Part shown: in pieces, positions 1-25,768 of the stretch
How the letters are laid out: each line of letters starts with the position of its first letter
Position numbering within the stretch: position 1 is the stretch's first letter
Origin: Macrostomum hystrix
Lineage: Eukaryota; Animalia; Platyhelminthes
Reading direction: 5' to 3'
Assembly: GCA_950097015.1 (NCBI GenBank)
Contig: CATNEN010000001.1
Coordinates: 2,852,001 to 2,916,000 of the forward strand
Length of the DNA stretch: 64,000 nucleotides
Program-made: the position numbers and the translations under genes
Notes under the pieces: model-generated
Told to the model about the DNA's origin: nothing
Seen by the model: the letters and a program-made list of their open reading frames with translations, nothing else
Database searches by the model: none

Positions 1-1070
1 AATCCCTAGTTTCCCTCCCACTAATTGCCGCCAAACCTAAAGTGTTAGTCCCTTAGGAGTAATAATTACGAAACCGCTGCGCGGGTTACTTATCTGGATG
101 CTGATTCGGCCGCGTGCTGCAATCCTGTAGCTCTCGGGGAAGGGATAGGGCAAAACAGCAAGGCAGAGAAGGGGGAAACTGCTGCGAGTTGGCAGGGGCC
201 AACACACGGGGAGCACAGTGGCTCAATTTAGAGCTCACCTAAAGAGGTGGCTTGCGCTTAGGGGATGAGGAGCAGGCAATGAGCCTGTGAGCGCTTGTTT
301 GAGCTTATAGCTCTGGGGTCTAAGCCCTAAGTGGATGTGGGAAAAGTGCCTTAGGTCCGGTGGGAGTCCGGTAAGGCAAGGTAAGGCTCCCGGAAGGTTC
401 CGGTAGGGAAAAGGGGTAGGTAAAAAGGTGGGGAGAAGGTTGGTAGGGCGGTCGGTTAAGGAAAAAGGTTCAGGAAAAAGGTTGGAAGGTAGGTTCGCCG
501 GTTCCTAGGGGCAGCGCAGCGCGCTTTCTTAAATAGTCCTGCAGCACGCCAACCCCGACATCCATCAAAATAACCCACATTCGCGCCAGCCTTTCAACGA
601 GGAATCGAAGCGGCGATGGCCACCCCGATTACCCAATGAACCAGCGGCGAGAAACGACAGATGCTCCTTCACGAGCAGCCGCCGACAGTCGGCCAATAAT
701 TGTTACTCCGCCAGGACAATGGGAAGCGCAGGCGCCGACCTGCCTACAGTGACATTTACACGTATCTAAAAGAGGAGGTCATAAAGTCGAGCTGGGCTCG
801 AATACTGTAAAGAAGTGGGGACATGAAGAATTAATGATCACTCATAATGCCCGAGTGATTCCCGATATCTGATCGCGGTTTGGAGGAGAATTATGACCTA
901 AACTACTCATACAATAAAAGCTATAGCCGCGATCAGTCATTCCTACAGGGGTCTAGACAGATCCAGGGAAAAGGGATTCGACGGCTACTTAATTCACCGC
1001 CGCCCAAAACCCGGCCCTAAGATTAATGATCTTGTTTGTGGCCAGCTGCTAGGTGGGTCGCGATTATTAG
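1..1070 (+). ncRNA. Putative large structured RNA, copy 1 (unknown class)
   Basis: Homologous to 3210-4211 and (from 657) to 8911-9324. Helices include 112-121/540-549, 15-21/360-366, 603-607/626-630, 745-750/804-809, 776-784/891-899 and 869-878/927-936, with compensatory and G.U-consistent changes between copies. Confidence 0.55.
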
Positions 1071-1517
1071 GTGGGTCGTAAGTCGCGATGCTTACTTACG
1101 TGTGAAGTGCGTAAGCATCACCTAAATCGCTACAATACTTGTTTGTCCGGAGTACATTGGCCCAGCAGCAACCTGGAGAAGAAAGGTGAGTTATTGCTTC
1201 TACTCGGCCTCCCAAGGCCGGTTATGAAAGGTTAATTGCGAGGGTTATGTCATAATAATTAGGATAACTAGAGTCCCCCTTACCCACGGCACGCCATTTA
1301 TCCCGAGAATCTGAAATTGACCCCGACCCGAAACTGCGAAAAAAAACCCTTCCTGAGTTAGTGATTGATTAAATTGAAAGTTATTTAGTTTGCGATTGCC
1401 ACCACTATTCTTCCACTACCTAATCGGACTACACCACCCTTCGCTTTCAGCAGCTATCTGCCCGGTCCCTATGAGCCAGAGCCTCGGCACCGGACAGCGT
1501 CGGGCGGCCCCATCGCC

Positions 1518-1789
1518 ATGTCATTTGTGATGAGTAAGTTGACATTGAAGAGCCTACATTCCCTCCCAACCTGGGTACCACCCTCGAGACTTCCACCTGC
1601 AAACCGCCACTGCGCCTTACTAGACTACTCATCCACCTTACTCTTGCAGACATTAACGTGCCCGAAGGCCGTGAGGCCGATTTGGCGGCCATCGTGTCCG
1701 GGTTTATTAGGGGCCCGCTGGGCATGGCCCTGGCCGCCGGAATAGCATTCGCTGCCATCACGCTCCTGGTGCTGATTATTCTTCTGTGA
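1518..1789 (+). CDS. Putative spliced 51-aa hydrophobic peptide (exons 1518-1533, 1650-1789)
   Basis: GCCATG start, GTAAGT donor at 1534 and CTCTTGCAG acceptor at 1649 join in frame to give MSFVMNINVPEGREADLAAIVSGFIRGPLGMALAAGIAFAAITLLVLIILL*. An upstream intron spans 1186-1450 and AATAAA lies at 1870. Confidence 0.45.
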
Positions 1790-3209
1790 CGACTACCATG
1801 ATTACCTACTGACTTGCTATTCCGCACCTAACTGTATGCATTTCCGCCATTGTGCCATGTGGCAATACAAATAAAACCGTCACCATTTGAAACGTAAACG
1901 AGAATTCGCTATCTGTGTCCGACTTCCTTTCGTAGATGAAACATTATTGCTCAAATTGAAATAGCTGCGGGTTTGCAATCCGATGATCTGTCCTCGTGAA
2001 GGAAAGGAGTGTGGGGATGGCGATAGAGTCGGAAGTCATACCGCAAAGGCTCGCGAATTGCCGCGGGAAGAGGGATGAAGGGAGAGATGAAGGGAGAGAC
2101 AGTGGATGCAGGGAGTGGTCCTCTCGGCCTCAGGCTGGCCAGTCCCACTCAACCCATAGGCCACAGGCATGACTGCCGTGCCTACCCCAAGCAGTGCTCG
2201 AAACCGGCTAAAAGTCTAAATAGATGTCGGACTACCCGCAGACGGATAGGACAGGGCTATGCAGCCTACTGTCATCAGTAGCATGTTCGTAACTGACCCC
2301 TAAACTCGGTAGCAGTGGTCGACTCGGCCTAGGCTCTTGTCTTAGAAATGCGGAAAGGCTATCGGCAAAGCGGAAAATGATCTAGGGTAGCGCCACCACC
2401 CAATGCGCCTACGTGGCCACCGCAGACATTTGGGAACTTGGGTCCCCGGAGCTCGCGGCTCCTAGTTTGTCACACAGATCTTAGACAAGCCGAAAAAATA
2501 GAGCCTTCTGTAACTTCCGTTTTAGACTAGGGTGAAGACCCCAGAATGGATCGAGACACGCCTCACCAGGGGATTCCTGAATTTGCGCTACAGTGGTCTA
2601 GAAAGGTGGTACTCCGAACCCGAAAGAGAAATCCATAGCCAGAATCCTACTCATGGGACATCAGACACATTCGGTACATTAGACTGCAGCCTACACATTA
2701 GATAACTAGCAATCCGAGTCTGTGTGAGTTGAGGAAAACAGAGGCAGGAGAGATTAAGCTGAACACTGGCTGAGTGATTATGCGAGCGTAAGATTAAAAG
2801 ATCATCACCCCCCACTTCCCTGGCGGTGGAAGCGAGAGGGGGAACGGAAGGGAAACTCAATTGGCAGGGGAGCTTGACACGCATTCCCAGTTCCGCCAGG
2901 AAACGGGGAAAACCCGCCAGGGAATTCCCCACCCCTGGGCAGAAAGACAACACGTGCTACACTCCGCATTTTACTTGCAAATCCCTAGCTCCCTATTGCT
3001 CTCATGCGCGCTTACAATTGCCTTCCTGCCGCAGCTTTCAGCTCGGCTGTGCCAGAGCCCACCCCCTAGGCGATTAGCCACTCATGACCGAGGGCTGTCT
3101 ATTGATAAAATAAAGGTAAAAAGGAGACATAATAAAAGAAGTTAAGTTGTTATAAAGTTAAGCCCAATAAGTTAAAGGTGCTTAGAATGGGTAGTTTATT
3201 AGGCGAAAC

Positions 3210-4280
3210 AATCCCTAGCTTCCCTCCCACTAAAATGCCGCCTAACTAATAGAAAGCCCCTTAGGAGCAATAATTGCAAACCGCTGCGCGGATTACTTAT
3301 CTGGAGTCGCTTCGGCCGCGTGCTGCAATCCCGTTGTTCTCGGGGAAGAGGATGGGGTAAGATAGCAAACGCCGGGAAGGGAAAGATGCTGCGAGTCGGC
3401 AAGGGGGCCAACACGCTTGGAGCTCAAGGCTCAATTTAACAGCTCACCTAAAGAGGTGGCTCGCGCTCAGGGGGAATGGGGACAGGCAATGGGCCTGCGC
3501 TAGCTGTGGAGCTATGAGCTCTAGGGTCTATGCCCTAAATGGGTCTGGGGGATGAGTCCTGGGTCCGGTGGGAGTCCGGCCCGGCAAAAGTAAGTCCGGC
3601 AGGGGAGAAGGGGAAGAGCCGGTGGGAGAAAAGAGGTCCTAGAGGGAGCAGCGCAGCGCGCTTGCTTAAATAGGCCTTGCAGCACGCCAACCCCGACATC
3701 CATCAAAACAACCCACATTCGCGCCAGCCTGTCATCGAGGAATTGAAGCGGCGATTGCCGCCCCAATTGCCCAATGAACCGGCGGCGGGAAACGACAGAT
3801 GTTCTGCGCGAACAGCCGTCGGCAGTCAGCCAGCGATTGTTACTCCGCCGGGACAATGGAAGCGCAGGCGCCGACCTGCCTACAGTGATATTTACATGTA
3901 TCTAAAGGAAGGAGGTCATAAAAGTCGAGCTGGGCTCGAATACTGTAAAGAAGCGGGGACATGAAGAATTTTATGATCACTCATAACGCGTGAGTGAGCC
4001 CCTATATCTGATCGCGGTTTGGAGGGGAATTATGACCTAAACTAGTTCATACAGTAACATTATGGCCGCGATCAGTCATTCCTACGGGGAGTCTAGACAA
4101 CTCCGGAGAGAGAGGATTCGACAGCTACTTGATTCACCGCCGCCTCAAACCCGGCCCTAAGATTAATGATCTTGTTTTGTGGCCAGCTGCTATGTGGGTC
4201 GCAATTATTAGTTACTTAAAAATTTGAAAAATTATGCTGGCTCACATTCCCACTCGATTCCCGCAGCACACTCCACATCA
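3210..4280 (+). repeat. Diverged copy 2 of the structured repeat, plus the LTR-like terminus (4212-4280)
   Basis: Aligns block by block to 1-1070. 4212-4280 is almost identical to 9325-9393. Confidence 0.9.
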
Positions 4281-4613
4281 AAATTTTATAACTGCCTAGC
4301 AACCAAAAAAAAAGTGAATTTTTAGACCGCTAACAATTTTTTTCGACCCGTCTGGAGACCTTTCTGCACGATTTATTACTATTCTATTCCCCCAGATGCC
4401 TAGAGTTGAATGCCCAGCTGCTGTCTTCTGGCGTCCCAAATAATAATTTTTTTCTGTCCCTCCTAGTCCTAGCAAAAGGAAACTTATCATTCAGATCTGT
4501 CATTCATTGAAACAGCCAGATTGTTTCCCATAGAATTTGAATACCTAACCCTACCGGCCTCTTGATTTACAACCGCCCACTCTTTAAACAAATATTAGAA
4601 AAACTCCCGAAAC

Positions 4614-5232
4614 ATACCACCCCGCTCACTTTAGCGGGTTGGTATTCCCCCTAAGATAGAAACGGGTATAACTAAACTCCCGAAAACCAAGCACAATGAA
4701 CATGTGAGATAAGCAGATCACGAAAATGTAGGTGCGAACCCTAGTTTGCGGCAATTATCAAGAGAAATCTCATGCGAAAATTCTTACAAAGGGGAATTTC
4801 ACCCCACTAAGTATGTTTTTGGGTTTTGATTAGTTTATATAGATTTTTAAGAGGTTTTGGCGCCGAGATGGCCTTTTTTTTATTTGAAGCTGCCCTCCCC
4901 CCTTAAAGAATTATGGAATTTCCCGGTGTATACCACCCCGCTCTCTTTAGCGGGTTGGTGTCCCTCCTAAATTAGAATTTATCCTAGCCTGAGTTCCCAC
5001 AGACCCACTAGAGGCAGAAGATAAAAAAGGTGCCATTCACGAAACAGTGCAAATAAGGTTATAGGCGTTTACGAAAGAGAAGGTGCAAACCCTAATATGC
5101 TGCAGTTATCAAACAATCTCATGTGAAACTCATGTGATACGAGGGGGATTTCACCCCATTAAATATGTTTTTGTGATTTTTTTGGCTAGATTGTAATAGT
5201 TTTTAAGTGGATTTTTTGGCGCCAAGATGGCT
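4614..5232. repeat. Diverged tandem duplication of a ~260-300 bp module (4614-4872, 4930-5231)
   Basis: Shared blocks ATACCACCCCGCTCWCTTTAGCGGGTTGGT, AATCTCATGYGAAA, GGGGA(A)TTTCACCCCA and TTTTGGCGCCRAGATGGC. Confidence 0.85.
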
Positions 5233-5409
5233 TTAGATGAAAAAAGGAAATCACAACGATGCGAGGAAGAAGGTGCTCGGTGCGAAACGTTACTAAAAGG
5301 GAGTTAGGGAGTGGGTCCAGGGATAGGAAGGATGAAGGCACGTAGGAGTCTTACTTATGCTGTCCGCGGACACCCTCTCTTTGTCCAAGCCTTGAGCCCT
5401 CCCACCTAC

Positions 5410-5991
5410 CTACTCTTCCTTAATGGCCGTACTCTCTGCTAACACCCCGCTTTCGTATTCTCCTTCCACCTGTCTCACCATTTGGCCCAGCGTGTAGTCC
5501 CCTGGCGGTGTCTCTTCGGCAGGGCCGTCCTCGGACAACTCGCGCCACCAGGGTGCGTGGCCCGGGCCATGCACCGTCCGTAGGGCATTCTCGTTGCCTC
5601 CTACCATCCGCACCACCAGCTGATGTTCTAGCTCTGCCTCGCCGGGAATCCGCGCGGCCTGTAGCCATGAAACAAGCTCCCTTGGCACCGACATGGCCCA
5701 GTCCGCAGGCGGGCTGTAGGCAGGCCACCGCAGGTTCCACGGCAGCGTAGCCTCGTCCTCTTCCTTCGGCGGGAGGGGGTCTCGCTCCTCGCACCACGCT
5801 TGTGCCAGCCACCGGGCTTCGGCCACCCGGCATGCGAGGGCGAGATCCGTGCCAGCCTGAGCTGCGCGACCCAGGGTGGGGAGCAGCCACAGGCGGATTA
5901 CGAGCCATGTCCTTTTGTTGGCCAGCTCCCGCCGATAGTCAGTCGCAGCCGCTTCCATCCACCAGGCTACTACAGCTCCCATTCCGGCCAT
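5410..5991 (-). CDS. Orphan Trp-rich ORF (~193 aa from the first ATG) downstream of the protease
   Basis: Open frame 5410-6042 preceded on the minus strand by a ~50-nt polypyrimidine tract (6110-6061) and a TTTAG acceptor near 6055. No motif recognised. Confidence 0.5.
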   Translation of the reverse strand: MAGMGAVVAWWMEAAATDYRRELANKRTWLVIRLWLLPTLGRAAQAGTDLALACRVAEARWLAQAWCEERDPLPPKEEDEATLPWNLRWPAYSPPADWAMSVPRELVSWLQAARIPGEAELEHQLVVRMVGGNENALRTVHGPGHAPWWRELSEDGPAEETPPGDYTLGQMVRQVEGEYESGVLAESTAIKEE

Positions 5992-6135
5992 TTCTACTAG
6001 ACGTGAATTAACTCTCTGCTCTTCGAAACCACCATTCCGCACCCTCGCCTAAGCCTAAATAAAGGGAAAAGGGGGAGAAAGGGGAGAAGGGAAAAAGGAG
6101 GGGGGTTGGGGCATTCTGCCTTGGAAAGCCAGGAC

Positions 6136-6783
6136 CTAGCGGACAGCCTTCCGCCTGAGCGAAAACGGGAGAAATTGGCGGTAAATGATTAGTTGGCGCG
6201 AGTCAAAGTCGAGGATGGCATGATGATGAGCCAACCAGGAGGCGCCGAGGAGGGGAGAGCAGTCGCCCTCGACCACCAGGAACAGCGTGTCCAGCGCTTC
6301 GGCGCCAACCTGTAATTTGACTTTGACCTGCGCCCGTGCAATAATAGGGGTGCCATTATACGCAATCAGAGAGAATTGAGGGGGTTCGAATTGACAGTGA
6401 TGGAAAATTGGTGACAGCGAGTCCGGGACCACATTAACCATAGACCCCGTGTCGATGAGGAGGTCTAGGGGCGCCCCTTCCACCTCCAAGGCGACCCACA
6501 CCTCACTAAGCTGCTCAGAGCGATTGGGGCGGGTTCGCACTCGGGTGGGGACTCGGCCGAGTGAATTCACTCGGACTTCTCGTTGGGCGGAGGCAGCGGG
6601 TGCCGCCGCTCCGATTGTCGGGCCGCTGGCTGGGTCGCGGAGCCGCTGGCCTGCCTCCAATTGGAGGCAATGGCCTGCTGGCCCGCTGGCCTGCCTCCTG
6701 CCTCCCGTTTCCCATCGCCTGCTCTGCACCAGCCTCCCTAGCAGCTCCCTTCTCCGCGCGCTTTGGGTGCCATTGATGCCCAT
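6136..6783 (-). CDS. Retropepsin-like aspartic protease
   Basis: LLIDTGS catalytic motif, LIAYNG flap-like segment and PLLGASWL. Stops right after the domain. Frame is +1 relative to gag. Confidence 0.9.
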   Translation of the reverse strand: MGINGTQSARRRELLGRLVQSRRWETGGRRQASGPAGHCLQLEAGQRLRDPASGPTIGAAAPAASAQREVRVNSLGRVPTRVRTRPNRSEQLSEVWVALEVEGAPLDLLIDTGSMVNVVPDSLSPIFHHCQFEPPQFSLIAYNGTPIIARAQVKVKLQVGAEALDTLFLVVEGDCSPLLGASWLAHHHAILDFDSRQLIIYRQFLPFSLRRKAVR

Positions 6784-7654
6784 TCGGATGCGGGCAGAGA
6801 GGGGGAATGGGGTTAGGTCGGACTTCTAGCAGCTGCTGAGCAATCTCGGCTAGCTGTTGGGTCACTCTAGCCAACTCTTCTGTGAGCTGGTGCGGCTGCC
6901 CTGGCTGGCTCTGTTCTTCCTCAGGTTCTGCCCTAACTTGGCGCACCCGTCGGCGAGGGTCGCGCTCAGCGTCCATCTCGAAGGCCTGCGTGGCGGCTCG
7001 CAGTTCGGCTGTAGCATCCTCGGCCGTGGCGAATTCCAGTCTCATGACCGGCGCCAGGACCTCCGGGGCGACTACGATTCCCTCCATAAAGGAAGCCAAA
7101 AGGGCCCGCTCAAAGTGCACGCCGCGGCCATTAGGGGTGGCCTGCAGAGCGGCGGTTCTCAGTCGGTCCGCGAAGGAGGTGTAAGTCTCCCCACGCTCCT
7201 GCTTCAAGTTTCGCCCACTCAGGAGCCGGGCGTAAGGGGTGCAGGCACCACTGAGGCTCTCGGTCAGGTCCTGCACAAACCCTGCATAGGTTCCACCGCG
7301 GGGCAGACCCATCGCCTCGGTGAGGGGTTCGCCACCCAAATGGGCCAAAAGGGTAAGGATCTTTTCTGCATCCGCCTCCAGGCCCTCCGCTTCCAACTTC
7401 AGGTCGAAACGGCGCAGCCAGAGGGGGAACGAATCCTTTCGGGATTCGTAGGGTTCAATGGCGACTTTAACCCGATGATTCCGGGGTCGCCGCAGGTCGA
7501 TGCGCTCTAAAAGTAGCGCCAAACGCTCTAAGGGGTCGGCGTGCTGAGCTGCAGCAGCCGCTGGGGGTTCGGCGCGCGCCGCTGCTGCGGCGCGGCCTCT
7601 TGGTGGGCGGCTTGTTCCAACCACCTCCACCACCTCATCCTCCTGGTCGGACAT
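6515..7654 (-). CDS. gag: Ty3/gypsy-type Gag (capsid)
   Basis: FPLWLRRF and the major-homology-region-like LKQERGETYTSFADRL. No CCHC knuckle visible. Confidence 0.85.
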   Translation of the reverse strand: MSDQEDEVVEVVGTSRPPRGRAAAAARAEPPAAAAAQHADPLERLALLLERIDLRRPRNHRVKVAIEPYESRKDSFPLWLRRFDLKLEAEGLEADAEKILTLLAHLGGEPLTEAMGLPRGGTYAGFVQDLTESLSGACTPYARLLSGRNLKQERGETYTSFADRLRTAALQATPNGRGVHFERALLASFMEGIVVAPEVLAPVMRLEFATAEDATAELRAATQAFEMDAERDPRRRVRQVRAEPEEEQSQPGQPHQLTEELARVTQQLAEIAQQLLEVRPNPIPPLCPHPNGHQWHPKRAEKGAAREAGAEQAMGNGRQEAGQRASRPLPPIGGRPAAPRPSQRPDNRSGGTRCLRPTRSPSEFTRPSPHPSANPPQSL

Positions 7655-8139
7655 TTTCGGCCAAAAGAGCGAATGAGGATTTTGCGAATTGAAGGGGGGG
7701 TTTTGTCGCTACTGCAACAATGGGGGAGAGAAGGATGGGGGTTGAGCAGTGCTCTGCGCACGACCAGGGGCCGTGGGAAATAGATAAAGAAAAAGAAGCG
7801 GGCCCGGCTGACTTACGTCACCCGACCTAAACAAATGATCAAGGAGAAAACCCCGGCCTAAAATAATCACTGCGATGCAGTGGCCGAAAAGCGAACAAAG
7901 AAAAGAATGAGGGAGAAAAGGGTCTGGGGCCCTGGCTAGCTTTTGCTTCCAGCCAATACCTGCTTGCGCGCACTCAAGTTTGGGACATAGAAGTCTAGGT
8001 TTTAACTTAGCACTCATTCTGCAACCCCATAGCGAACTGTTACACTATAGGTACGGCGGGGTCAGTGCTACTGCGGGCTCGCGCCTGCGGCAGCCCATCA
8101 CCCTACCTTGGAAAGCACACGCCTCTATAAGATACTCAG

Positions 8140-8575
8140 AGAAAAGACAATCCCCGACTCGCTCAGAGAGTCATCGATTCCCGGCTGCATTGCCGGGGGC
8201 CCCCCTCGCGATTTACGAGACTGGGAAGCCCAGGGGGGATATACCTGGGATCTCGCTCGGATAAGGGTCCATGGCTAAAGCCTGGTTGCCCCGTTTAGAA
8301 TACCCTTCAGAGAATTTCTTAGAAAGACGTGCTGACCGAATTCTAGCCCATACTTGAAGTAGGCAGCTTCGAGAGGCGGGCACGGGTGCTGCTAGGCTCC
8401 CTCAAAGTCCCACCTCCCTAACTGTTCCCCACCTAAGTTAGACTTGGTCAAAGCTACGTGGCACTTTCAGAATCAGATACATGTAAGCAGGCCCTGCGTG
8501 CTGCCCAAGAGAACCAATCCCCGGTGCTCGGCGAGTCATCGATTCCCGGCTGCATTGCCGGGGGCTCCCCTCGCT
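8140..8575. repeat. Duplicated ~65-bp hairpin motif in the gag leader
   Basis: GAGTCATCGATTCCCGGCTGCATTGCCGGGGGC occurs at ~8168-8200 and ~8533-8565. Confidence 0.9.
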
Positions 8576-8910
8576 CGGTTAGAAGGCCGAAAGGCGTTGC
8601 CCGGTCCCTCGTTAAGAAAGGCCCCTCCCAGAATAGTCACGCGGGAAACCCCAAAGACAGTCCCTGACTCCTGCAGCAGCCACATAACCCGAAGACACTC
8701 TAGCATGAAGTCCGCTCACACAGCCTACTCATAGTAGAAAGTCACTAATCAGAATTTTGGAAATTCTAACAAGAACTAAATTACATTGAGATCAAATCGT
8801 AACTGTTCGGAAATTAATTGACAGTCACTAGAACTGAGATTCACTATTTAGAGATAAGATTTCGGCATACGGAAAATGAAATCTAGAAGGAGCCCTTTCG
8901 GCTAGCTACC

Positions 8911-9393
8911 ACAGATGCTCCTCGAGAGCAGCCGCCGGCAGACGGCCAATAATTGTTACTCCGCCAGGACAATGGGAAGCGCAGGCGCCGACCTGCCTAC
9001 AGTGACATTTACATGTATCTAAAGGAGGGAGGTCATAAAGTCGAGGTGGGCTCGAATACTGTAAAGAAGTGGGGACATGAAGGATTAATGATCACTCATA
9101 ATGCCCGAGTGATTCCCGATATCTGATCGCGGTTTGGAGGAGAATTATGACCTAAACTACTCATACAATAAAAGCTATAGCCGCGATCAGTCATTCCTAC
9201 AGGGGTCTAGACAGATCCAGGGAGAAGGGATTCGACGGCTACTTAATTCACCGCCGCCCAAAACCCGGCCCTAAGATTAATGATCTTGTTTGCGGCCAGC
9301 TGCTATGTGGGTCGCAATTATTAGATACTTAAAAATTTGAAAAATTATGCTGGCTCACACTCCCACTCGATTCCCGCAGCACACTCCACATCA
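8911..9393 (-). repeat. LTR-like terminal repeat (partial copy 3 of the structured repeat)
   Basis: 8911-9324 is near-identical to 657-1070, and 9325-9393 is near-identical to 4212-4280. Confidence 0.85.
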
Positions 9394-9437
9394 CTACATA
9401 CTATACTACTGCTGTACTATTTCTCATTCATACGCAG

Positions 9438-11098
9438 GCAGTTTCTAAAGACGGAGCCCGCGCAATCTCCCACTTTGCAACGCAACGATTTGTTAGCTCT
9501 GCCATGTCCCAGTGGGAGACAATCCTGAAGTCGTTTGGCGAGCTGCACGCGGCTTTTCGGAAAGAAAATCCGTTTTGCACAGCAGACGAGACCCTCCAAT
9601 ACGAAATGTTTGGAGACGGCTTTGCCTTCGACTTGCTATGTCTGCTCGACTTGCTCGGTCCAATTAAGTAAGTTCTGTTGACCATAGCTACTGCTTACAT
9701 TTTTGTTAAAACATAATGATAAACAACTATAAACCATTTTGGCACAGGGCCCTGATGGAGATGGCGCAGAACCTCCAGCTACATCACTGGAAGGTCCAGC
9801 TCCACTGGAGAACTGTCGCTAGTTTTCTAGAGCGGCGGGCCAAGGAGTTCCGTGTCTCTGACTACCCGAGACTGGAGCAGTGTCTCAAAAACAGTGACTC
9901 CGTACAACCAGGTGGCTCATTCCGTGGCGTACGGCTGCTACGTGGCTGGGTCATTGACAAAGACCAGCCTGCTAGAAACACCCCTGGCATTAATTCTCAT
10001 GGAAGAATTAATGGAAGAATCAAAAATCGAAAGATTTTCGATCTTTCGAAAATAGCTACCTGCATCACCATTTCCTTTGATTTTGCTTAAGACATGCGCG
10101 AGGACATGCGAAGACTTGCTGGTGCTCTGCACAGTGCACTTGTTTCCCGCATGGACAAAGCCGCTAACGCAGATGTTTTAAACTGCGTCTGCCTCGACGC
10201 CGAGCGTGCTATTCGCTGTATAGCTGCAGCGGATTCCGAGGCCGAGATCGAAGAGGTGACTCATGCACCTGCCTGTCGGCAGCTTGTGACGGCAGCGGCA
10301 AAATTTCCGCAACTTGCTGACCTCGACCCACGTGTCTGCCGAAAGTACATAGCTTTGTACATTGAGACCATCCAGCACGTGATGCTATCCGGCGAAGGTC
10401 GAGACGGCTGGCTGAACCCTGTCATTGAAGGGCCAATCGAAAGAGTTGCTCTGGCTCCACCGCACGGTCCCGCCGACATGGCTCTTCGGCTAACCTGCAC
10501 AACTGCCAATGGTCAGGTGGAGTGTACTGTTGACGAAGCTTTTATCTACCGCGCATTCTATTCAACTCCGTGCGTTTATCAGCAGGCTGGTCAGCAAACC
10601 TGTGCTCTGTTGGACTTCGCGCTTAACCATAGTGGGACTGGTAATCCACTTTACCTTGTGCATTAAGCTGTACTGTACTGGGCTATTAGTATCGATCGTA
10701 TACATTATCTAGTACAGCTCAATACGTCATATCGTACGTCTATTGATCAGTCCATCTCCAAGTATTTTTTCAACCCCAAATTCTTAGAGGCCATCGTAGA
10801 GTCATTCTACACCACCATGTGGTTGCAGCAACAGCAAGGGCCTCAGTCCAATAACACGTTGCAGCTTCGGGCCAAGCTGCAATGGATGCTGCCTCCCGTT
10901 GGCAGCAATGCTCTTGAACGTTTCTTAGATACTGCTGCGAAGCTGTATTATAAGGGGGACAGTTCGCGTGGAATTCGGCCCTATTTCCACCCATTCTTTG
11001 CCGATCTAACGAAGGCGAAAAAACATTCCACAAGCAAAGTTGTCAACAAGCGACTAGATCAATTGTCAAGCTGCTGCTTCATCGGTGTTGACAACTAA
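9438..11098 (+). pseudogene. hAT-like transposase, C-terminal part, intron-containing
   Basis: In-frame splices 9667/9748 and 10640/10788. FATQRFVSS resembles the TRW motif, and TEAIVESFYTTM resembles the hAT catalytic E / dimerisation region. In-frame TAA at 10088-10090. Confidence 0.55.
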
Positions 11099-11845: not shown

Positions 11846-14800
11846 CGAGCGGAGCGAAGCGGAGCGAGTCTTTAGGTTTATGATGCCCCGGTAGGTCTGA
11901 TGTGCCAAACCCCCCCCCCTTTTTCTCAGCTCGTACCCTACCGATTTTCTTGGGACTTGCGCCATTCGATTCGTCGTCGAAAATTAGTTTGGGATCACCA
12001 AAACAGACTTGCAACATTTCCATTGCTTCCTGCTCAAAATTGAGTATTTCCCTTTCTGAGCTATTTTTAGCATCAAGGTCAGAAGTCAGAGCCTTTTTAA
12101 CTTTCCTTTCCTTCCTTCCTTAAGGAAGGCAGGCTCCACGCAGCAGGGGGGCAGTTAATGTACATTGAATTCACTGGCCTAGCACAGCAGCGGGCATCAG
12201 CCAGCCAGCCACACTAAGGCTCCCGACCTCCCCTTCGCCCCTTAACCAATTGGCCTGCACTTGCCAAAGCCACACACCACTGACACTAAGGAAGGAAGGC
12301 TGGCTGCTATTCAATTGTGCAGCACACACCAACCCCAAATCCTTTCGGGCCAGTTAATGTGCATGTGAAGACAGAAAACACAAAACAACCCCACACCACA
12401 CCACACAGCACGAAGCAGCCCACATAAGGACCACCACCACTACTGCAGCGACATTGTTAGCTGATATTGTTGTACTGACTTAGTATTATAAAATAATAAA
12501 TTAGTCTATTAAAATGTAAAAATTAAATTAGAAACAAAATGAGCCCTCCGAAGTTTCCAGCTAGTTGTCCAAAATGTGGACTGTTTTGGAAGAAAGGTCG
12601 GCAGTCATGCTGTAGGAGAAGCTGCAATTTCAATTTACTCGGAGGGCTGAAGGGTCCAGAGTTTGGTGCACGAGGAAAGCAATTTGGCGTTCAAGGAAAA
12701 CAATTTGGTGAAAAAGGGCGTCGTCAGTTTGGACACGAAGGACGTGACTTCGGATTGCTCGTCGGTCGTCGGGTTGCAAGTAAGTTTGTGTTTTTATACT
12801 TTCACCACACAAGAGATTAGGGTCCGAGACCCGATGATATATTTAATTTCTCTATAACGTTCTACACATGCTCCAGGGAATTCTTCTTCTGCTTCACCTC
12901 TGCCTATTTCGCGGCCAAACACGCGTTACGTTTGCTTTGCAAACAGTGCGCTCACCAGTCTGATATCCGGCACTGTCCTGGGCCAGTTGGCATCTGACAT
13001 CGGAGAGCAAGCTACTGCCACGAATGTCGAGTTATTATTGGCGAATTGTAGCAGATCAGGACAAGAGCAGAATGTGCATCGACTCATCAATGCAGTGGCT
13101 GCGGTAGGTGCAGCGGGTCCGCAATTCGTTGTTGGTGAGTTTGGTGATTGTGCAGAATTTTTGTCGGCTTTGTTGCAGCATCTGGCTGTTGGAACTAGGA
13201 GTGATGCTGTACGCCATTTGTTTGAGCTGCCAATTTTTATCAGGTGTGATACCTGCTTATCAGTGCTATATGAAGGCCGACATTTACTGCTTTCATTGCC
13301 AGTGCCTTCGACAGCGAATAGTATGACACTGCAGGATTTAATTGTCAGATGGATGACGATTTCTGTCGCACAGCAATGTTGCCCCAATGCCCAGCCAAAT
13401 TTGGAATTTAACCAAGCACCTAAGCACATAGTAGTTGAGCTGTCGCGCATTACTGAGTCATTAGAGCCCGTGCGGTCATTAGTAAACTTAGTCGCTGAAT
13501 TTAGAATTGGAAATCGAGTCTATTATCCTACAGCAGTAGTGCATCAAACCGGAAGCCAGCAGCTTGGTACATCACACTTTTTCTGTGATGTGTACAACAA
13601 CGATTCCTGGTATCGATGTAATGATTTCTCTGTCACATCCATCAGCAAGGAAGAAGTTGGCCTCGGCGGCAGAACCTGCTGTCTTTTGATTCTCACAGCT
13701 GATCTACACTCATCTCCTTTCTCTGCTAACGTTCAGCAAGTGCGTTTTAGTAATGCCGCTACTACAAGTGTTCACGCAGATCCACCGGATGCTGCTTCAG
13801 CCTCTACGAGTGTTCCCGTGGATTCACCATATGCTGCTTCTGGTGAAGCTGGTAATGCCTCGCAAGATGCAGCTCCTTTTTGCTCACAGATTTACGACGA
13901 TGCGCAGCTTCCGTCACGGGCACAACATGCAGCCAACGACAACGAAGAGGTTGGTACCAACTCCACCCCCCAGAGGCCTTCTGTGTATGATGAATGGATG
14001 ATGCAGAAATCGCTACAACCGACATTCAATGATTTCATAGAATATCGGCAAATGGAGTTCGACGCGATGCGGTTGCATGCTGATGCTGTCGATTTTAAGA
14101 GCTACTTACCAGACTTCAACCCATTTTTGGGCTTAGGAATTAAATTTGACGCCAATATTGCCGAATACGCGACTTGGAAAAAGTGCAAAGTTTGTGAACG
14201 ACAGTGGCCCAATCTTGATGTAGACAATAATGGAAAGTGTAAACATTGCAGAGTTCCAGACACCCCACTATTTTCACCAGCCAATGGATTCAGTCTGGAA
14301 GATGTGCCCCCTGACCTGAATGATCTGACATGCGTGGAGCAAGCTTTGATCTCGCGGCTGCATATTGTGAAAACGGTATATCTACTGCGTGGATCTTCAT
14401 GTAACTTAAGCCGTGGTCATTCTATTGCATTTGAGCAGGATGTGCAAGGGTTTATTAATCGCTTGCCCTGCAGTGCAGCCAACCTGCCTTTCCTCGTGGT
14501 GCGGATGCCTGGAACCTGTGTAACCAAGGTTAAAGACTTTCGAGTAAGGCGACATCGTGTGCTACGAGCACTAAATTGGTTGCGCTTAAATAACCCAGAG
14601 TATAAATCTATCGAAATTGACGACCACTTACTTAACACCCTTCCCGAAGATGGCTGCATTTATGAAGTGCCGCACATTGATATTGGAGTTGAAAATTCAG
14701 CCGACTCCGGTCCCAAAGACAGTTCCGACGATATTCATATCGATCGGAGTGCCGCTCAGCCAGGTGGGGATTTCTCGGGTCTACGTCAAGAGAAGTTGAT

Positions 14801-17800
14801 TCTAAGAGCTTTGCAGAACATTTCCGTTCCGTACCCAGCTGTCGGATCACATGCAGTGCAAGAGAAAACCCCTGGCTACTTTACTTGTGCTTTTCCTTGC
14901 CTCTTTCCTTACGGCCGATGCGACATCACTCGCAGTGGGCGCTTGAAACAGCCACAGCTGACAACAGGCACTTATCAGAAATACTTTCAGTTTCTTGTAC
15001 AGCTCGACAGAAGATTTGCACAGCATCACCTGTTTCCGTTTGTGGCTGCAAACATGCTGCAGCGTCATCAGGCAATGCAGATCGGTGGAGTGTTCTGCGA
15101 TCGTGCTGTTGCTGGACTTTCGGCTGAGGAACTGGCTCGACGTTATCAAAATGGAGACCGAAGTATCATTAACAAGCTGTCACATTTTGCATCTGTAATA
15201 AAAGGTAGTCCATCTTACTTTCAACAGATGGCTCGGAAATCTCTTTCGTACTGTGCCTACAATAGAATTCGTGGCGATCAAATGTTCAACGTTTTCATGA
15301 CTTTGTCGGCTGCAGATCTGCAGTGGAAGGATTTACATCTTATTTTAGACAGGGAAAATAATTATGTAGATAAGAACGTGATCCGTCTCGGCGTGGGTGA
15401 CACGCTGCCTCATGGCAGTCTGGATGCTAAGTCGGATATGGCGATGCGCATGAAGAATCTGCGAAACAATTCTGATGTGGCTGACTGGTTTTTCTGCGAA
15501 AAAGTGCGACACTTCATGAAGCACGTGATTCGTCCTGCATTCGGCGTCATTGATTTTATTATTCGGTACGAGTATCAATTCAGGGGATCTGTGCATGCTC
15601 ATATCCTGCTGCAGGTCCCAAATGCTGTGACCGCTGCGGATCTCAAACTGGCATCGTTACTTTGGAAGCAGCATGCTGGCATGGTAAATTATAACGACGA
15701 TGAGTCTACGGCCATTCATGAAAGCAAATTGCGATACGAAAAATTCACGATGTTGATGGGGGTCAGAGCGGTTCATCCGGAGTGCAATGTGAAGCAGTGG
15801 CCGCCTCCATTGGGAGAAAATTTTCAGGAACCTCCAGTCAATTGCCTTCGAATGCGCTATTCAGATGTCGCTGCCAGTGCCAAGGAGCGTTCTGCACTAA
15901 AAGACGTTTTGCGTCATGACTACACTCTCTTAACAAACCGAACCCTGCTTCATGACTGCCGGAAGGGCAAGTCGTCCTGCTTTAAACATAATAGTGATAA
16001 GTGCCGTTTTCAGTTTCCTCGTGATTTGGTCGATTATTTTCTTTGGCCCTGCAATTCTGGCGTTCGTGAAGGAGAATCCAAACCAGAAACTTTTTATCGT
16101 AGAGGAGGTACGCACAGTAACATAGTTTTTGACCGGAGTGGGATGCTTGTAATTCGTAATCACCCTTTCGTTGTTTCACACGTGCCAGAATTAGCGCAAA
16201 TTTTCAGAAGCAACGTTGATGTCCAGTTGGTGCAATCTTATTCGTCGCTGCTAAAGTACCTCATGAAGTACACCCTGAAAGGCGAAGGAAGCTCAGATGC
16301 ATTTTCCGTTATTACTGCCGACGTGCTGAAAAGTTCAAGTAGTGCACTGGATAAAACACGCGCATCTGTGTACCAGAAGCTGCTGATTCAGTGGACTGGA
16401 AAGCGCGACTACTCAATGCAAGAAGCATTTCACCTAATATTTAACCAACACTTTGTTGAATTCGGACGCGAATTTCGTACGGTCAGCTTGGGTGGTAAGA
16501 AACTTCTAGCAAAGAACTCAATTGATTGGGCAGAACTTTACTGGAGCAAAGACGAAGACCCAAACTTTTTTAATCTCTTGCAAGCTTTTATCAGTGGAGA
16601 TGTTACTACGGACCCTCGGCTTGTCACATTGTATGAATTTGTGAGTAGCTACAGTTCCAAGTGGAGGCCACTAGGCAGTGGTGAACGAGGTTCGCACAAC
16701 ACTGCCTACATTCCACATGTGGTGCCTTCAATTGTCAAAGCACCCGTGAAAGGCTCGCCACAGTATAAACAATTCTGCTGGCAGCAGCTGATTCTGCACC
16801 TACCGGGTGCCAAGCCAAGCGAATTAGAAATCGATACAGCCGATGTGATGCTCGCTGAATTCGTCAAAAACAACTCGAGGTGTCCATCTTATGTTAAGGA
16901 ACAGTTCTATCAACTTCAGCTGCCGCAGAGGGGACCTAAGAAGGTTGTCGACGACATTGCAGAAAGAATTATCAATTGTCGTGACGACTCCAATGAAGCT
17001 GAACTCGTTCCCGATGATCTTCCCGTGCCAAATAATCTGATTTTCCAGGCGGACTGGACTGGTGTGCATAGGAATAATCCAAACGAAGAGCTTCAGGTTG
17101 ACTCCGACGATGAACAAGAGGAGCTGGAAAAAATGGCTCGAGCATCTGATTACGCTTGCTGCAATAGAAGGCTCTCTCTTCAGCAAATTGAAGCTGGTGT
17201 TCATTGGTTGAAGAATACAACTAAACAGTATAACCAGATTGGTGATAAAGCAAAAGTTACCGATGATGTCCACATGATTGACCCAAATTCGCTTAACGTA
17301 AAGCAGAGACAGATTTTTACATATATTACACAAAAACTCGATGAATATGTCCGTTGCAATGTTGATCTGCAGAGTGAATGGCCTAAACCTATTTATGTTG
17401 ACATTTCTTGAGCTGCTGGTTGTGGCAAGTCATTCACATTGAAGTGCATTCTTCAACATCTTACAGAAAGTTTGCGTCAGAGAAGCTCTGCTTCCTTGAA
17501 TGACAGCTCTGTGGCTCAAGTTGCTGCCTACTCAGGCTGCGCAGCAAATCTTATTGGTGGTTGCACGCTTCATAGCCTGTTGAGCTTGCCACTGAAGCCT
17601 AAAAATATCCAACCGTTATCAGCAGAGCAGCTAGTGCGTTTGCAAGCGCAGCATAAAAATTTGCGCATGCTGTTCATTGACGAGAAAAGCATGATGGGTA
17701 AATTAGCTTTTGCATGCATTGATCATCGGTTGAGAGAGCTTTTTCCAGCCAATGCAACAAGGCCTTTTGGTGGGATTTCCATCGTTCTGTTGGGTGACTG

Positions 17801-19361
17801 GTGTCAACTACCGCCTGTGAAGGACACTCCGTTGTTTGCTGAAAACCCAAAATACGCCACCAAGATGCACTCTGATGCTACTATTCTCTTCGAGCTTTTC
17901 ACAGACTGTTTTGAATTAGCTGTCAATGAGAGACAAACGGGCCAGTCAGAGTTGCAGTTTCGCGATGAATTACAGCGGCTTCGTGATGGCACGTTTACAA
18001 TTGCCGACTACAGGCATTGGCAGGAGAGACTATTCAACTCTGTTGCTGTAGATGAGCAGCTGGAATTTGCTGGAGCCACGCACATTTGCATGGTGAATTC
18101 TGTCAAGAATGTATGCAATCGAACAGCACTGATTTCAATGCAGGAGCCTATCATTGGAATTCATTCATTTAACAGCCGAGGAACTGTGCGCATCGAAGGA
18201 CTAAGTAATAAACTTTATCTGGCAGTTGGAGCCCAGGTCATGTTGACACGCAACATCTGGGTTACTGCTGGTCTGACGAATGGAAGTGAAGGCATAGTGT
18301 ACGACATCTGTTATCTTCCTGGACGCAGCCCTCCCGATCTGCCTGATGTCATTGTCGTGTGTTTTCCTGGATTCTCTGGACCTCCATTCCTGCCTGAAAT
18401 TGCTCACTCTGTCGCTCTAGTCCCAGTGACGAGCGTGGCAGACGATGACACCAACGTCAGATATAGGAAGCAGTTTCCTCTAAAGCTTTCCTTTGCAATG
18501 TCAGTACACAAGGCTCAGGGAAAAACGTTGGAGAAGGCAATTTTACACCTGGATCGCAGAGAGTTCACACCCGGTCTGTTGTACACTGCCTGCACTCGGA
18601 CTCGCAGAATACAGGATCTGCTGTTCATGTCTCTGCCGCCTTTCATAGTATTCCAGCAAATGGCCCAATCGTCTTCGTTCAGGCTTCGACGAATGGTGTT
18701 CGAGCAATTTCACCAACGTTGCAGGATTACAGCGGAACGTCTGCAACAGCTTTAAAGTGAGCATTTTTATTCCTTTTGAACGCTGTCCAGGATTTTAGCT
18801 TTTGAGGCGCTCATGGAATGTGGGGTCGGGTCGCCATGAATTCAGTTAACTCACGAATTACTACCTTGGCTTCCTCATACTTCTCTCGTATTTATTTCAA
18901 TTGGTGAAACTACTGTAGTCGTCATTCCTCGCGAACTACAGGCACTCATCAGCAGCAGCAGCAGCATCACTATGGTCAGCCGAACAAACAGCACCCGACA
19001 GTTGCACGGTGTTAAGCAGGACTCTGAACTGATTCTCAGACAGTGCTTTCGACCAGCTAATAAGGCCCGACTGACTGACTTGCAATTCGACCTGATGACC
19101 AAGGCTCTGGATAGCTGGATGTCTATGTCTATGACTATGACTAAATTACTATGAAAATGACACTGACTTTGCCTATTAACCCTGACTATGACTATGGCCA
19201 TGTATACACAACTCTAAACCTATTTGCACTATTTGCAATCTTTATGATAGGTGGCTAATGAGATTATTGAGTCCATCCCATTCCCAAATGGGGAAAGATC
19301 TGTCACTTCTGTCATAGCTGTCAGGGGAACTATCGTAATGCAGTTCCTCACGCTCCGCTCG
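11846..19361 (+). mobile_element. Helitron-like rolling-circle element, Helitron2/Helentron (HLE2) type
   Basis: Contains the Rep-helicase gene. An 11-bp inverted repeat CGAGCGGAGCG lies at 11846-11856 and 19351-19361 in T-rich flanks, with a hairpin GGGGAACT/AGTTCCTC at 19324-19349. Confidence 0.75.
12539..18755 (+). CDS. USP(C19)-Rep(HUH)-PIF1 helicase transposase, ~2040 aa; exons 12539-12779 and 12877-18755; interrupted by TGA 17409-17411
   Basis: The phase-1 intron joins in frame. USP boxes NTRYVCFANSAL, DCAEFL and HQTG..SHF..WYRCND. DUF6570-like VRRHRVLRALNWLRLNNPEY. Rep motifs FMTLS, EYQFRGSVHAHILL and YLMKYTLK. PIF1 motifs (G>*)AAGCGKS, FIDEKSM, GDWCQLPPV, QFPLKLSFAMSVHKAQGKT and YTACTR. 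Confidence 0.92.
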
Positions 19362-23716: not shown

Positions 23717-24269
23717 GCTTGGAGGTGCTTACTGGCCTGCGCTTTGCACTGCCACACTTTGGATAACAATCCTAGCAGTTGTCCACCGCAGCAGCAGCAG
23801 CAGCAGTTGTGTCAGGATCTTCAACAGCAGCAACAGAGAGCTTCGAGTCTTTGCTCTACAGCCAGTCTATAGCTGGATTGAAGTGCCCTAGTTAGGCCAG
23901 CGAGTCTATCCGGACCCGACCAACAGCTAGCTAGTCAGCAATCCCAGCTGTAGCAGCATGCAATCCGATTGTAACAAGCCAGCTTTTACAAGCCTAGGCA
24001 CGAAGCGGTTCTAATTTAAAGGCAAGCAGCAGTCAGGATTAAAAAAATTCATTTGTCTGCTTTTATCGGTTTTTAATGTTTACATTGATTTCTATTTCCT
24101 TTAATTTTGTTGTTTTTTAAACGGATCAGCTAATAAATTTCGTCTTTCACTTGTGTAGCTGCTCATTTAAAATAACTATAACTTTAACTATAAAATAGCT
24201 GCTCATTTACATAAAATGCTTTACTATCTTTTTGGCTATTATAATGTAGAAAATAATATCTCTTATCTT

Positions 24270-25385
24270 GCTCTCCCCTAATTCGTTCTCTCTCCCATCT
24301 TCCTCTTCCCTCGTCCTCTCTCCCATCTTCCTCTTCCCCAGTCCTCTCTCCCATCTTCCTCTCCCCTCGTCCTCTCTCCCATCTTCCTCTTCCCTAGTTC
24401 TCTCTCCCATAATTCGTTCTCTCTCCCATCTTCCTCTTCCCTAGTTCTCTCTCCCATCTTCCTCTTCCCCAGTCCTCTCTCCCATCTTCCTCTTCCCTAG
24501 TCCTCTCTCCCATCTTCCTCTCCCCTCGTTCTCTCTCCCATCTTCCTCTTCCCCAGTCCTCTCTCCCATCTTCCTCTCCCCTCGTCCTCTCTCCCATCTT
24601 CCTCTTCCCTAGTTCTCTCTCCCATCTTCCTCTTCCCCAGTCCTCTCTCCCATCTTCCTCTTCCCTAGTTCTCTCTCCCATCTTCCTCTTCCCCAGTCCT
24701 CTCTCCCATCTTCCTCTTCCCTAGTCCTCTCTCCCATCTTCCTCTCCCCTCGTTCTCTCTCCCATCTTCCTCTCCTCTTATTCTCTCTCCCATCTTCCTC
24801 TCCCCTCGTCCTCTCTCCCATCTTCCTCTTCCCTAGTTCTCTCTCCCATCTTCCTCTCCTCTTATTCTCTCTCCCATCTTCCTCTTCCCTCGTTCTCTCT
24901 CCCATCTTCCTCTCCCCTCCTTCTCTCCCCCATCTTACTCTTCCCTCGTTCTCTCTCCCATCTTCCTCTTCCCTCGTTCTCTCTCCCATCTTCCTCTCCC
25001 CTCGTCCTCTCTCCCATCTTCCTCTTCCCTCGTTCTCTCTCCCATCTTCCTCTTCCCTCGTCCTCTCTCCCATCTTCCTCTTCCCTCGTTCTCTCTCCCA
25101 TCTTCCTCTTCCCTCGTTCTCTCTCCCATCTTCCTCTTCCCTCGTTCTTTCTCCCATTTTCCTCTTCCCTCGTCCTCTCTCCCATCTTCCTCTCCCCTCG
25201 TCCTCTCTCCCATCTTCCTCTTCCCTAGTTCTCTCTCCCATCTTCCTCTCCTCTTATTCTCTCTCCCATCTTCCTCTTCCCTAGTTCTCTCTCCCATCTT
25301 CCTCTTCCCTCATTCTCTCTCCCATCTACCTCTTCCCTCGTTCTCTCTCCCATCTTGCTCTTCTCTCATCCTGTCTTCCATCTTC
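24270..25385. repeat. 28-bp polypyrimidine/polypurine minisatellite
   Basis: Roughly 40 units of TCTCTCTCCCATCTTCCTCTTCCCTCGT. Confidence 0.97.
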
Positions 25386-25768
25386 TGTGCTCACAATCTT
25401 TAAAGCTCTCCTGGGTAATAATTTTTGCATAATGGCAGAATGACAGAAACGAAGGCTCCACTTCCTAGCTGTTTAAAAATCGAATAAAAAAGTAAAAAAA
25501 GTAGTTTCTAGGAAACTAGTGAATTTTGTTTTAGCCAGTAACCATGGTAACTAGGCCCAACTGTTTCTCTGTCTGTTAGTTTTTAGCATCCAGTTTCATT
25601 TTTTCTATTTGTCGTCCTACGGTGCGGGATCTGAATTTTAGTTACACTGAGTCCTTTTAATATTTTTTTGGGATAAAATGCTAACTACAAGTCTATATAA
25701 TAGTAGGACTTACCTGCGGCTTTAGTGAGCTAGATTATCACAGTTAGATTTCTATTAAATATCAATAA

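Follow-up and report, generated by a model that had tools for sequence, protein, structure and literature searches.

The window analysed here is a stretch of 64,000 nucleotides from the flatworm Macrostomum hystrix (contig CATNEN010000001.1). It begins with nested remains of minus-strand LTR retrotransposons that belong to one family (Table 1). The repeated 1-kb stretch, which a preliminary description had treated as a unit in its own right, turned out to be part of a larger one, namely half of a terminal repeat (LTR) of ~2.33 kb. The segments 1-1070, 3210-4211 and 8899-9324 are diverged copies: the identity between copies A and B is 80.6% in 1-371 and 88.6% in 507-1070 (372-506 cannot be aligned), and between copies A and C it is 95.8%.

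Copies A and C represent the damaged LTR pair of a single old element; another member of the family inserted into this element and left the solo LTR, copy B. The LTR represented by copy A starts 1287 nt before the window, where homology to the other copies begins (TGAAATGG...). It is broken at 1070, and its last ~70 nt are deleted, all other copies running ~70 nt further to ...CCACATCA; the shared unit ends in this way at 4280 in copy B and at 9393 in copy C. Copy C lacks ~1.9 kb, the PBS-side end of the LTR being among the deleted parts, and its flank reads CTAC vs. CCAC at the far end of copy A. Within the remnant that separates copies A and B, the segment 1158-1259 matches the internal region of a full-length relative upstream, and another genomic copy carries this same sequence beyond its LTR. 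Copy B has its own target-site duplication (TSD), AAAT, which can be read at 1943-1946 and 4281-4284, and both its termini are common to other copies. Copy B was rejected as a 3′ LTR belonging to the gag element, since this duplication flanks it on either side and no purine tract is present at 4281.

Table 1. Coordinates of the features discussed in the text (positions within the window)
Feature	Position	Strand	Remarks
Copy A	1..1070	-	in-window part of the 3′ LTR of the old minus-strand element
Arm of the 10-bp long-range complement	112..122	.	partner 539-549; invariant except the adjoining 122/539
Candidate structured RNA domain, copy A	568..696	-	closing stem and hairpins HP0 and HP1
Internal-region remnant adjoining the 3′ LTR of the old element	1071..1946	-	homology to relatives
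Copy B	1947..4280	-	complete solo LTR (2334 nt; TG...CA) inside the old element
AATAAA	3195..3200	- (sense)	single occurrence in the 2334-nt LTR, sense position 1081
Candidate structured RNA domain, copy B	3706..3833	-	-63.5 kcal/mol, z -4.28
Internal region of the old element	4285..8898	-	ORF3, aspartyl protease, gag, leader
ORF3	5410-6042	-	
Aspartyl protease	6136-6783	-	
gag	6515-7654	-	
Copy C	8899..9393	-	truncated 5′ LTR of the old element

A genome search for the LTR returned 278-281 candidates, i.e., at least ~280 copies, and the paired LTRs are spaced ~8.6 kb apart. The LTR has TG...CA ends (TGAAATGG...CCACATCA) with discrete 5′ and 3′ boundaries common to many copies, and the TSDs in the family are 4 bp long (AAAT for copy B; CAAT, CAAC and GTTT for solo copies; CAGG for a full-length copy). 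The idea that the repeat is the 3′ end of a LINE was rejected on account of the discrete 5′ boundaries and the TSDs. In the full-length copy, two direct-orientation LTRs of 2.33 kb, 97.7% identical to copy B, stand on either side of a 6.3-kb gag-protease region; another full-length copy is situated upstream of the window. The sequence TGGTGGCATCGAGG... (TGG...), which is PBS-like, begins 1 nt beyond the 5′ LTR of the full-length copy, and the purine tract GAAAGTGAGCGAAGGAGGAG abuts its 3′ LTR. The position of TGG... just after the 5′ LTR and of the purine tract just before the 3′ LTR fixes the orientation of the element.

Among the six ORFs of at least 72 aa in the full-length copy, the only Pfam match was an aspartyl protease (gag-asp_proteas). 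The proteins that an autonomous element would encode, i.e., reverse transcriptase (RT), RNase H and integrase, were found by Pfam and ORF analysis neither in the window copy nor in the young full-length copy, and a long pol ORF is absent from both. A Gag-protease query against a protein atlas returned generic retrotransposon gag/aspartyl-protease clusters only. The family is a pol-less, non-autonomous LTR retrotransposon comprising gag, protease and ORF3. It shares with other non-autonomous LTR retrotransposons (gag- or gag-protease-only, mobilised in trans) the TG...CA ends, the 4-bp TSDs, the PBS-like site, the purine tract, the occurrence of both full-length and solo copies, and the presence of gag and protease without RT or integrase; the difference lies in the LTR, which is unusually long here (2.33 kb).

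The studied stretch corresponds to the sense positions ~70-1070 of this 2334-nt LTR, and the plus strand of the preliminary description is antisense to the element. The orientation that had been given relative to gag was correct, though there is no overlap between gag and the stretch. From sequence features, we infer that the stretch represents the U3/R-side half of the LTR, and in the same way we place its transcription, the transcribed strand and the U3/R/U5 borders. The AATAAA found just 3′ of the studied stretch on the sense strand is present in 46 of 58 copies and is a candidate poly(A) signal; if this conserved motif does serve as such, U5 would take up more than half of the LTR. Parts of the LTR are contained in seven public runs, and those examined were short fragmentary contigs bearing neither strand nor end information.

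The preliminary description had proposed that the antisense (plus) strand folds into a selected pseudoknotted RNA of more than 1 kb (a ribozyme, an IRES-like element, a scaffold or a packaging domain). All the complementary segments that it named do exist where it placed them, and the plus-strand consensus folds of the region A105-436 beat column shuffles (z -4.6 and -6.1), the minus strand being nearly as strong. However, the data obtained show neither excess folding nor covariation on the plus strand. When compared to shuffled sequences, the plus strand folded no better (z -1.03), the 200-nt windows examined gave z values between +1.0 and -2.5, and the hairpin score of copy A was 21 vs. a null mean of 20.7. 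Complementarity between k-mers, and with it the long-range pairing, stayed at the chance level: against dinucleotide shuffles, we counted 37 vs. 35.4 complementary 7-mers, 5 vs. 2.0 complementary 9-mers (P = 0.075), and 2 vs. 0.48 complementary 10-mers (P = 0.125).

The multi-copy alignment that had been suggested as a check was made with 58 copies out of at least ~280, and all the variant and covariation statistics refer to these 58. Analysed on both strands, it revealed no plus-strand covariation and brought out a 129-nt domain on the minus strand. For the plus-strand fold, shared and singleton variants kept pairs equally (OR 1.0-1.3, n.s.). Clean double changes were not enriched in helices, since only 13 of 334 fell within stacks of at least 4 bp vs. 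5.7% for random paired columns. These 334 apparent double changes come from relatedness alone, a caution that, between two diverged copies of a repeat, inherited complementarity mimics compensatory changes.

Of the compensatory changes reported earlier, only the one at 664/675 proved to be a clean double change (CG in 37 copies, TA in 21). In the helix AATCG/CGATT (603-607/626-630), the pair 606/627 occurs in all four combinations (CG 20, CA 15, TA 14, TG 8; 58 copies) with no association between the two positions (Fisher p = 0.18), and at CG sites such as this one, the changes look like CG>TG and CG>CA arising independently of each other. The replacement of GGGTCT/AGATCC by GGAGT/ACTCC is a register shift rather than a compensation, the original register being broken in 26 copies. 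The long-range (112-121/540-549) and pseudoknot pairings, presented as selected, never vary and so carry no evidence of covariation; next to the 10-bp helix, the pair 122/539 (A-T in 41 copies, G-C in 13) is one possible compensatory pair. A search of 1-10000 against Rfam 15, covering both strands, yielded no match at E<=1. Moreover, the best hairpins give A·C on the plus strand where the minus strand has G·U. We consider a selected plus-strand RNA of this size highly improbable. The copies are alike through descent from a replicating family and not through the upkeep of a plus-strand fold, and most of the helices described are short complementarities that any 1 kb contains, passed on unchanged.

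As for the strand that is folded, the evidence favours the minus strand over the plus strand named before. Two helices of the preliminary description, 603-607/626-630 and 663-666/673-676, have a place in this picture as the tips of the adjacent hairpins HP1 and HP0, respectively, in the 129-nt domain, though on the opposite strand. The domain is assigned to the minus strand because its many G·U pairs would turn into A·C mismatches if the plus strand were the folded one: with 45 pairs predicted, G·U was found at 16 vs. A·C at 1 (p = 2.7e-4, a value which, like the other p-values here, overstates independence because the copies are related).

The 129-nt minus-strand fold combines such strand-specific wobble with excess folding and with stems that are kept while the loops vary. 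In copy A, the domain reaches -61.4 kcal/mol (z -4.61; none of 200 shuffles was as stable) vs. -38.2 for the plus strand, and RNAalifold gave -56.7 kcal/mol for the minus strand vs. -21.0 for the plus strand. When consensus folds were compared to column shuffles, the z values were -4.1 and -6.4 for the minus strand and only -0.05 and -0.2 for the plus strand. Single sequences gave z values of -4.3 to -4.6 in three subfamilies, and one subfamily folds the domain less well (z -1.6). HP1 is an imperfect hairpin of ~75-90 nt with about 35 bp, small bulges and a stability of -41 to -48 kcal/mol, which is kept in 58 of 58 copies; in a strand-neutral inverted-repeat search, HP1 of copy B scored 31, higher than all 200 shuffles (maximum 27).

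Pairing in the domain was kept by 12 shared variants and broken by 1, the corresponding numbers for singletons being 6 and 9 (p = 0.006), a comparison that favours the domain since its structure was derived from the alignment that also supplied the variant counts. With structures predicted from single sequences, the domain region showed no more than a trend (10-11 kept vs. 5-6 broken). The above-mentioned 664/675 is the single clean compensatory double change in the domain; the pair 606/627 is doubly changed in some copies but occurs in every combination. What remains of the signal consists of wobble-type changes, which mutation or editing bias on the sense strand could also yield. These data suggest that the two-hairpin fold predicted for the sense strand may be real.

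A bias of this kind belongs to another explanation, in which selection maintains no RNA structure at all. The inverted repeats would then work at the DNA level, if they work in any way, as palindromic factor-binding sites of the LTR promoter, and the G·U excess would stem from strand-biased mutation or editing (A>G, C>U) that affects the RNA or the coding strand of the element. Such an explanation would accord with the location of the stretch in the likely U3 promoter part of the LTR, with the short perfect palindromes common in A105-436, where the two strands score alike, and with the single clean double change in the domain. It also has a precedent in the genus, as the LTR retrotransposon promoters of Macrostomum lignano bear heat-shock elements, i.e., functional DNA palindromes in U3, the families concerned being autonomous Ty3/Mdg4 and Ty1/Copia elements (PMC12801592). 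The case studied here likewise concerns the likely promoter part of a Macrostomum LTR, but neither a canonical heat-shock element (three-unit, sought on either strand) nor a TATA box was found in the LTR. Furthermore, the other chance inverted repeats of this LTR are free of a minus-strand bias: with HP1 left aside, copy A has 2 plus-type vs. 1 minus-type mismatches, and copy B has 4 vs. 1. Over its whole length, the minus strand exceeds in keto bases by a mere 2-5% or so, and the domain hairpins keep their stems though their loops are hypervariable. We regard the explanation by DNA sites and mutational bias as rather unlikely.

Taken alone, HP1 might be viewed as a hairpin of the LTR that yields small RNAs, pre-miRNA-like or of another kind, in keeping with its size, the number of base pairs, the small bulges, the stability and the conservation in all 58 copies. 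The closing stem and the adjoining HP0 point to a larger domain and not to a lone precursor, and no miRNA family in Rfam was matched; this role for HP1 appears improbable.

Taken together, the results lead us to believe that the stretch is very probably the U3/R-side LTR half of a minus-strand non-autonomous element, where the evidence for a maintained fold is confined to the 129-nt domain of the sense strand. The domain belongs to no described family (no Rfam match). It would be transcribed as a segment of the element RNA, with a place in U3-R at the 3′ end and, if it lies within R, a second one at the 5′ end, and it could act there as a cis-acting signal of the element RNA, with packaging, strand transfer or 3′-end formation as candidate roles. 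RNA hairpins derived from LTRs are familiar from retroviruses, such as the TAR and poly(A) hairpins in R of HIV-1 and the Rex-responsive element in U3/R of HTLV-1. Like these, the domain described here is predicted to form a stable local stem-loop structure in the sense transcript of an LTR, upstream of a candidate poly(A) signal; it shows no sequence or Rfam similarity to them, and the analogy would be functional only. We tentatively propose, with slightly less than even confidence, that selection maintains the two-hairpin sense-strand domain in the replicating lineages, and that it serves as a cis signal of a pol-less parasite mobilised in trans, be it as a packaging tag for its own Gag, as a way to borrow the reverse transcriptase of a partner, or as a strand-transfer hairpin in the R region.

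The stretch is an ordinary though unusually long LTR and not a new large ribozyme-like RNA. Its sense-strand hairpin domain resides in an element that is unable to copy itself and, if real, could reveal how parasites of parasites are recognised and mobilised.

Comparison of the three repeat copies named in the preliminary description bore out their presence: copy A (window 1-1070) is 80.6% identical to copy B (3210-4211) over A 1-371 and 88.6% identical over A 507-1070, with a purine-rich, unalignable middle between these blocks, and is 95.8% identical to copy C (8899-9324). All complementary segments listed there were likewise found in place. The repeat unit, taken for a stretch of about 1 kb, proved to be much longer when copies and flanks were compared. 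A search of the source genome itself (220 Mb, 42 contigs) gave about 280 candidate copies. The similarity sets in abruptly with TGAAATGG..., at 1947 in copy B and, in copy A, 1287 nt ahead of the window, and ends with ...CCACATCA at 4280 and 9393; the sequence outside these boundaries varies copy by copy. Copy B is bracketed by a 4-bp duplication, AAAT (1943-1946 and 4281-4284), and other copies by CAAT, CAAC or GTTT. Sharp ends, differing flanks and 4-bp duplications mark the repeat unit as a long terminal repeat (LTR), of which most copies are solo LTRs.

Features of the window, with copies A, B and C as parts of an old LTR element and a later insertion
Feature	Position	Strand	Description
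Copy A	1-1070	-	3′ LTR of an old minus-strand element, broken at 1070
Interior of old element	1071-1946 and 4285-8898	-	holds ORF3, protease and gag
Copy B	1947-4280	-	solo LTR from a second insertion into the old element
Copy C	8899-9393	-	5′ LTR remnant of the old element; ~1.9 kb missing, including the PBS side
129-nt domain	568-696 (A), 3706-3833 (B)	-	core of the folding signal, by consensus folding
Direct repeats	4594-5179		spaced 316-352 nt, 78-87% identical; element interior, downstream of ORF3
Helitron-like transposon	12987-18755	+	two long ORFs; Pfam matches DUF6570, Helitron_like_N, UCH protease domain, PIF1 helicase
Strand-composition block	24001-26000		extreme: GC skew -0.57, AT skew -0.43; probably low-complexity or satellite
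220-aa ORF	46426-47088	-	weak match (29.2 bits, cut-off 27) to PIF6, per os infectivity factor 6 of large insect DNA viruses

One full-length element is found 30-41 kb upstream of the window. In another, younger one on the contig of the window, both LTRs are 97.7% identical to B, and a CAGG duplication flanks the element; TGGTGGCATCGAGG... begins one base past its 5′ LTR, and the purine tract GAAAGTGAGCGAAGGAGGAG directly adjoins its 3′ LTR. The repeat thus occurs at both ends of an interior, has TG...CA termini and lies between target-site duplications; the positions of a putative PBS and a purine tract at the internal borders show that the sense strand of the element is the minus strand of the window. 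In the full-length interior of 6.3 kb, Gag is encoded as a fusion with an aspartyl protease, in addition to a third ORF; this interior yielded no reverse transcriptase, RNase H or integrase, and for want of reverse transcriptase and integrase the element is not autonomous. The LTRs of young copies are about 99% alike although the family (Gag-protease and ORF3; window 1-9393, G000:C1:2810600-2821496) is pol-less; reverse transcriptase and integrase would therefore have to be supplied by an autonomous partner. The stretch consists of LTR DNA from a pol-less family with many past transpositions.

The stretch first described corresponds to sense positions ~70-1070 of the 2334-nt LTR. Since it lies directly upstream of the sole AATAAA on the LTR sense strand (kept in 46 of 58 copies), we infer that it falls in U3/R. 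Diversity among copies is 0.015-0.14 in A501-1070 vs. 0.13-0.26 in A1-400, the former being far better conserved. The purine-rich, indel-rich A401-500 in the middle of this LTR half (3580-3640 in copy B) is hypervariable (diversity 0.41-0.47, gaps in 52-73% of alignment cells) and is adjoined on both sides by much better conserved sequence. This profile fits a constraint, acting in cis, over the outer ~640 nt of the LTR.

The proposal of a selected, pseudoknotted plus-strand RNA of more than 1 kb was examined in an alignment of 58 copies of the stretch. The supposed compensation AATCG/CGATT to AATTG/CAATT dissolved: pair 606/627 (copy A numbering) occurs in all four combinations (CG 20, CA 15, TA 14, TG 8) with no association (p = 0.18), a pattern of the kind that two CG sites would give by turning independently into TG or CA. 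In place of GGGTCT/AGATCC, the B-type copies have a helix in another register, and 26 copies no longer pair in the original one. The double change at 664/675, inside helix 663-666/673-676, is clean (CG 37, TA 21). The pairings 112-121/540-549, 15-21/360-366, 776-784/891-899, 745-750/804-809 and 869-878/927-936 are essentially invariant, so that the long-range and "pseudoknot" pairings, adduced for a maintained fold, speak neither for nor against it. The mere existence of long-range complementarities in A is expected, because dinucleotide shuffles hold as many complementary 7-mers (37 observed vs. 35.4), without significant enrichment of 9-mers (5 vs. 2.0, P = 0.075) or 10-mers (2 vs. 0.48, P = 0.125). 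Next to the 10-bp helix 112-121/540-549, pair 122/539 (A-T 41, G-C 13, A·C 3, G·U 1) is one possible compensatory event, judged post hoc.

A strand-neutral inverted-repeat search in A gave a best score of 21 vs. a shuffle mean of 20.7. Plus-strand folding of 71-1070 yielded z = -1.03, and 200-nt windows ranged from +1.0 to -2.5. The division of the family into subfamilies makes 334 column pairs, at any distance, resemble clean Watson-Crick double changes; 13 of these (3.9%) fall in stacks of at least 4 bp vs. 5.7% for random paired columns. Using structures predicted from single copies, we also compared how often pairing is kept by variants shared by at least three copies and by singletons, as shared variants were transmitted via replicating lineages and singletons are mostly post-insertion decay. 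On the plus strand, the odds ratios were 1.0-1.3 and not significant. The Rfam search suggested in the preliminary description returned no family for the stretch. With this plus-strand z value, no enrichment of double changes in helices and no excess of pair keeping among shared variants, the large plus-strand RNA is not supported.

On the minus strand, the odds ratios in the comparison of shared variants with singletons were 1.7-2.3 (p 0.014 to 0.0003) for three of four reference copies, and folding of 71-1070 gave z = -2.73. When consensus folds of 200-column windows were compared with column shuffles, a strand-specific signal mapped to A437-773 (minus z -4.1 and -6.4, plus -0.05 and -0.2). 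Its 129-nt core is predicted to comprise a closing stem of 5 bp and two hairpins, HP0 (10 bp) and HP1 (~75 nt); the columns that vary most within this domain are the loops of both hairpins. Two helices proposed earlier, 663-666/673-676 and 603-607/626-630, survive as the tips of HP0 and HP1, but on the minus strand. For 32 dereplicated copies, RNAalifold gave -56.7 kcal/mol with 45 pairs on the minus strand vs. -21.0 with 27 pairs on the plus strand. Single sequences folded at -61.4, -63.5 and -63.4 kcal/mol (z -4.6, -4.3 and -4.25), with none of 200 shuffles as stable; in a fourth subfamily, z was only -1.6.

Among the 45 minus-strand pairs, G·U occurs in at least three copies at 16 and A·C at one (binomial p = 2.7e-4), and pairing was kept vs. 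broken by 12:1 shared variants and 6:9 singletons (p = 0.006), these p-values overstating independence because the copies are related, and the structure being taken from the alignment used for counting; structures derived from single sequences give no more than a trend in this region. A single clean two-sided compensatory change lies within the domain. Aligning arm against arm without folding rules gave 5-9 minus-type vs. 0-1 plus-type mismatches per copy, an asymmetry absent in other chance inverted repeats of the LTR. The minus-strand folding and this asymmetry reverse the earlier assignment of the folded strand to plus where the evidence is best. The main rival explanation is a combination of DNA-level palindromes and a strand-biased mutation process. 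Wobble-type conservation could be imitated by a bias toward A>G or C>U on the sense strand, through editing or transcription-associated mutation. Public sequencing runs contain the LTR as short contigs of unspecified type, which carry no information on strand or ends. We put the chances that the domain is a selected cis-acting RNA element at about even.

Retroviruses bear hairpins in LTR-derived RNA, such as TAR, the poly(A) hairpin and the Rex-responsive element, to which the 129-nt domain may be likened in function, by analogy only. The LTR promoters of M. lignano retrotransposons bear heat-shock elements (PMC12801592); no canonical heat-shock element was found in the LTR studied here. In sense orientation, the stretch as U3/R would be promoter DNA and would also belong to the 3′ end of the element RNA, and to its 5′ end as far as R extends. 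Candidate roles of the domain as a cis-acting element are packaging by the Gag that the element itself encodes, 3′-end formation and, should the domain lie within R, strand transfer.
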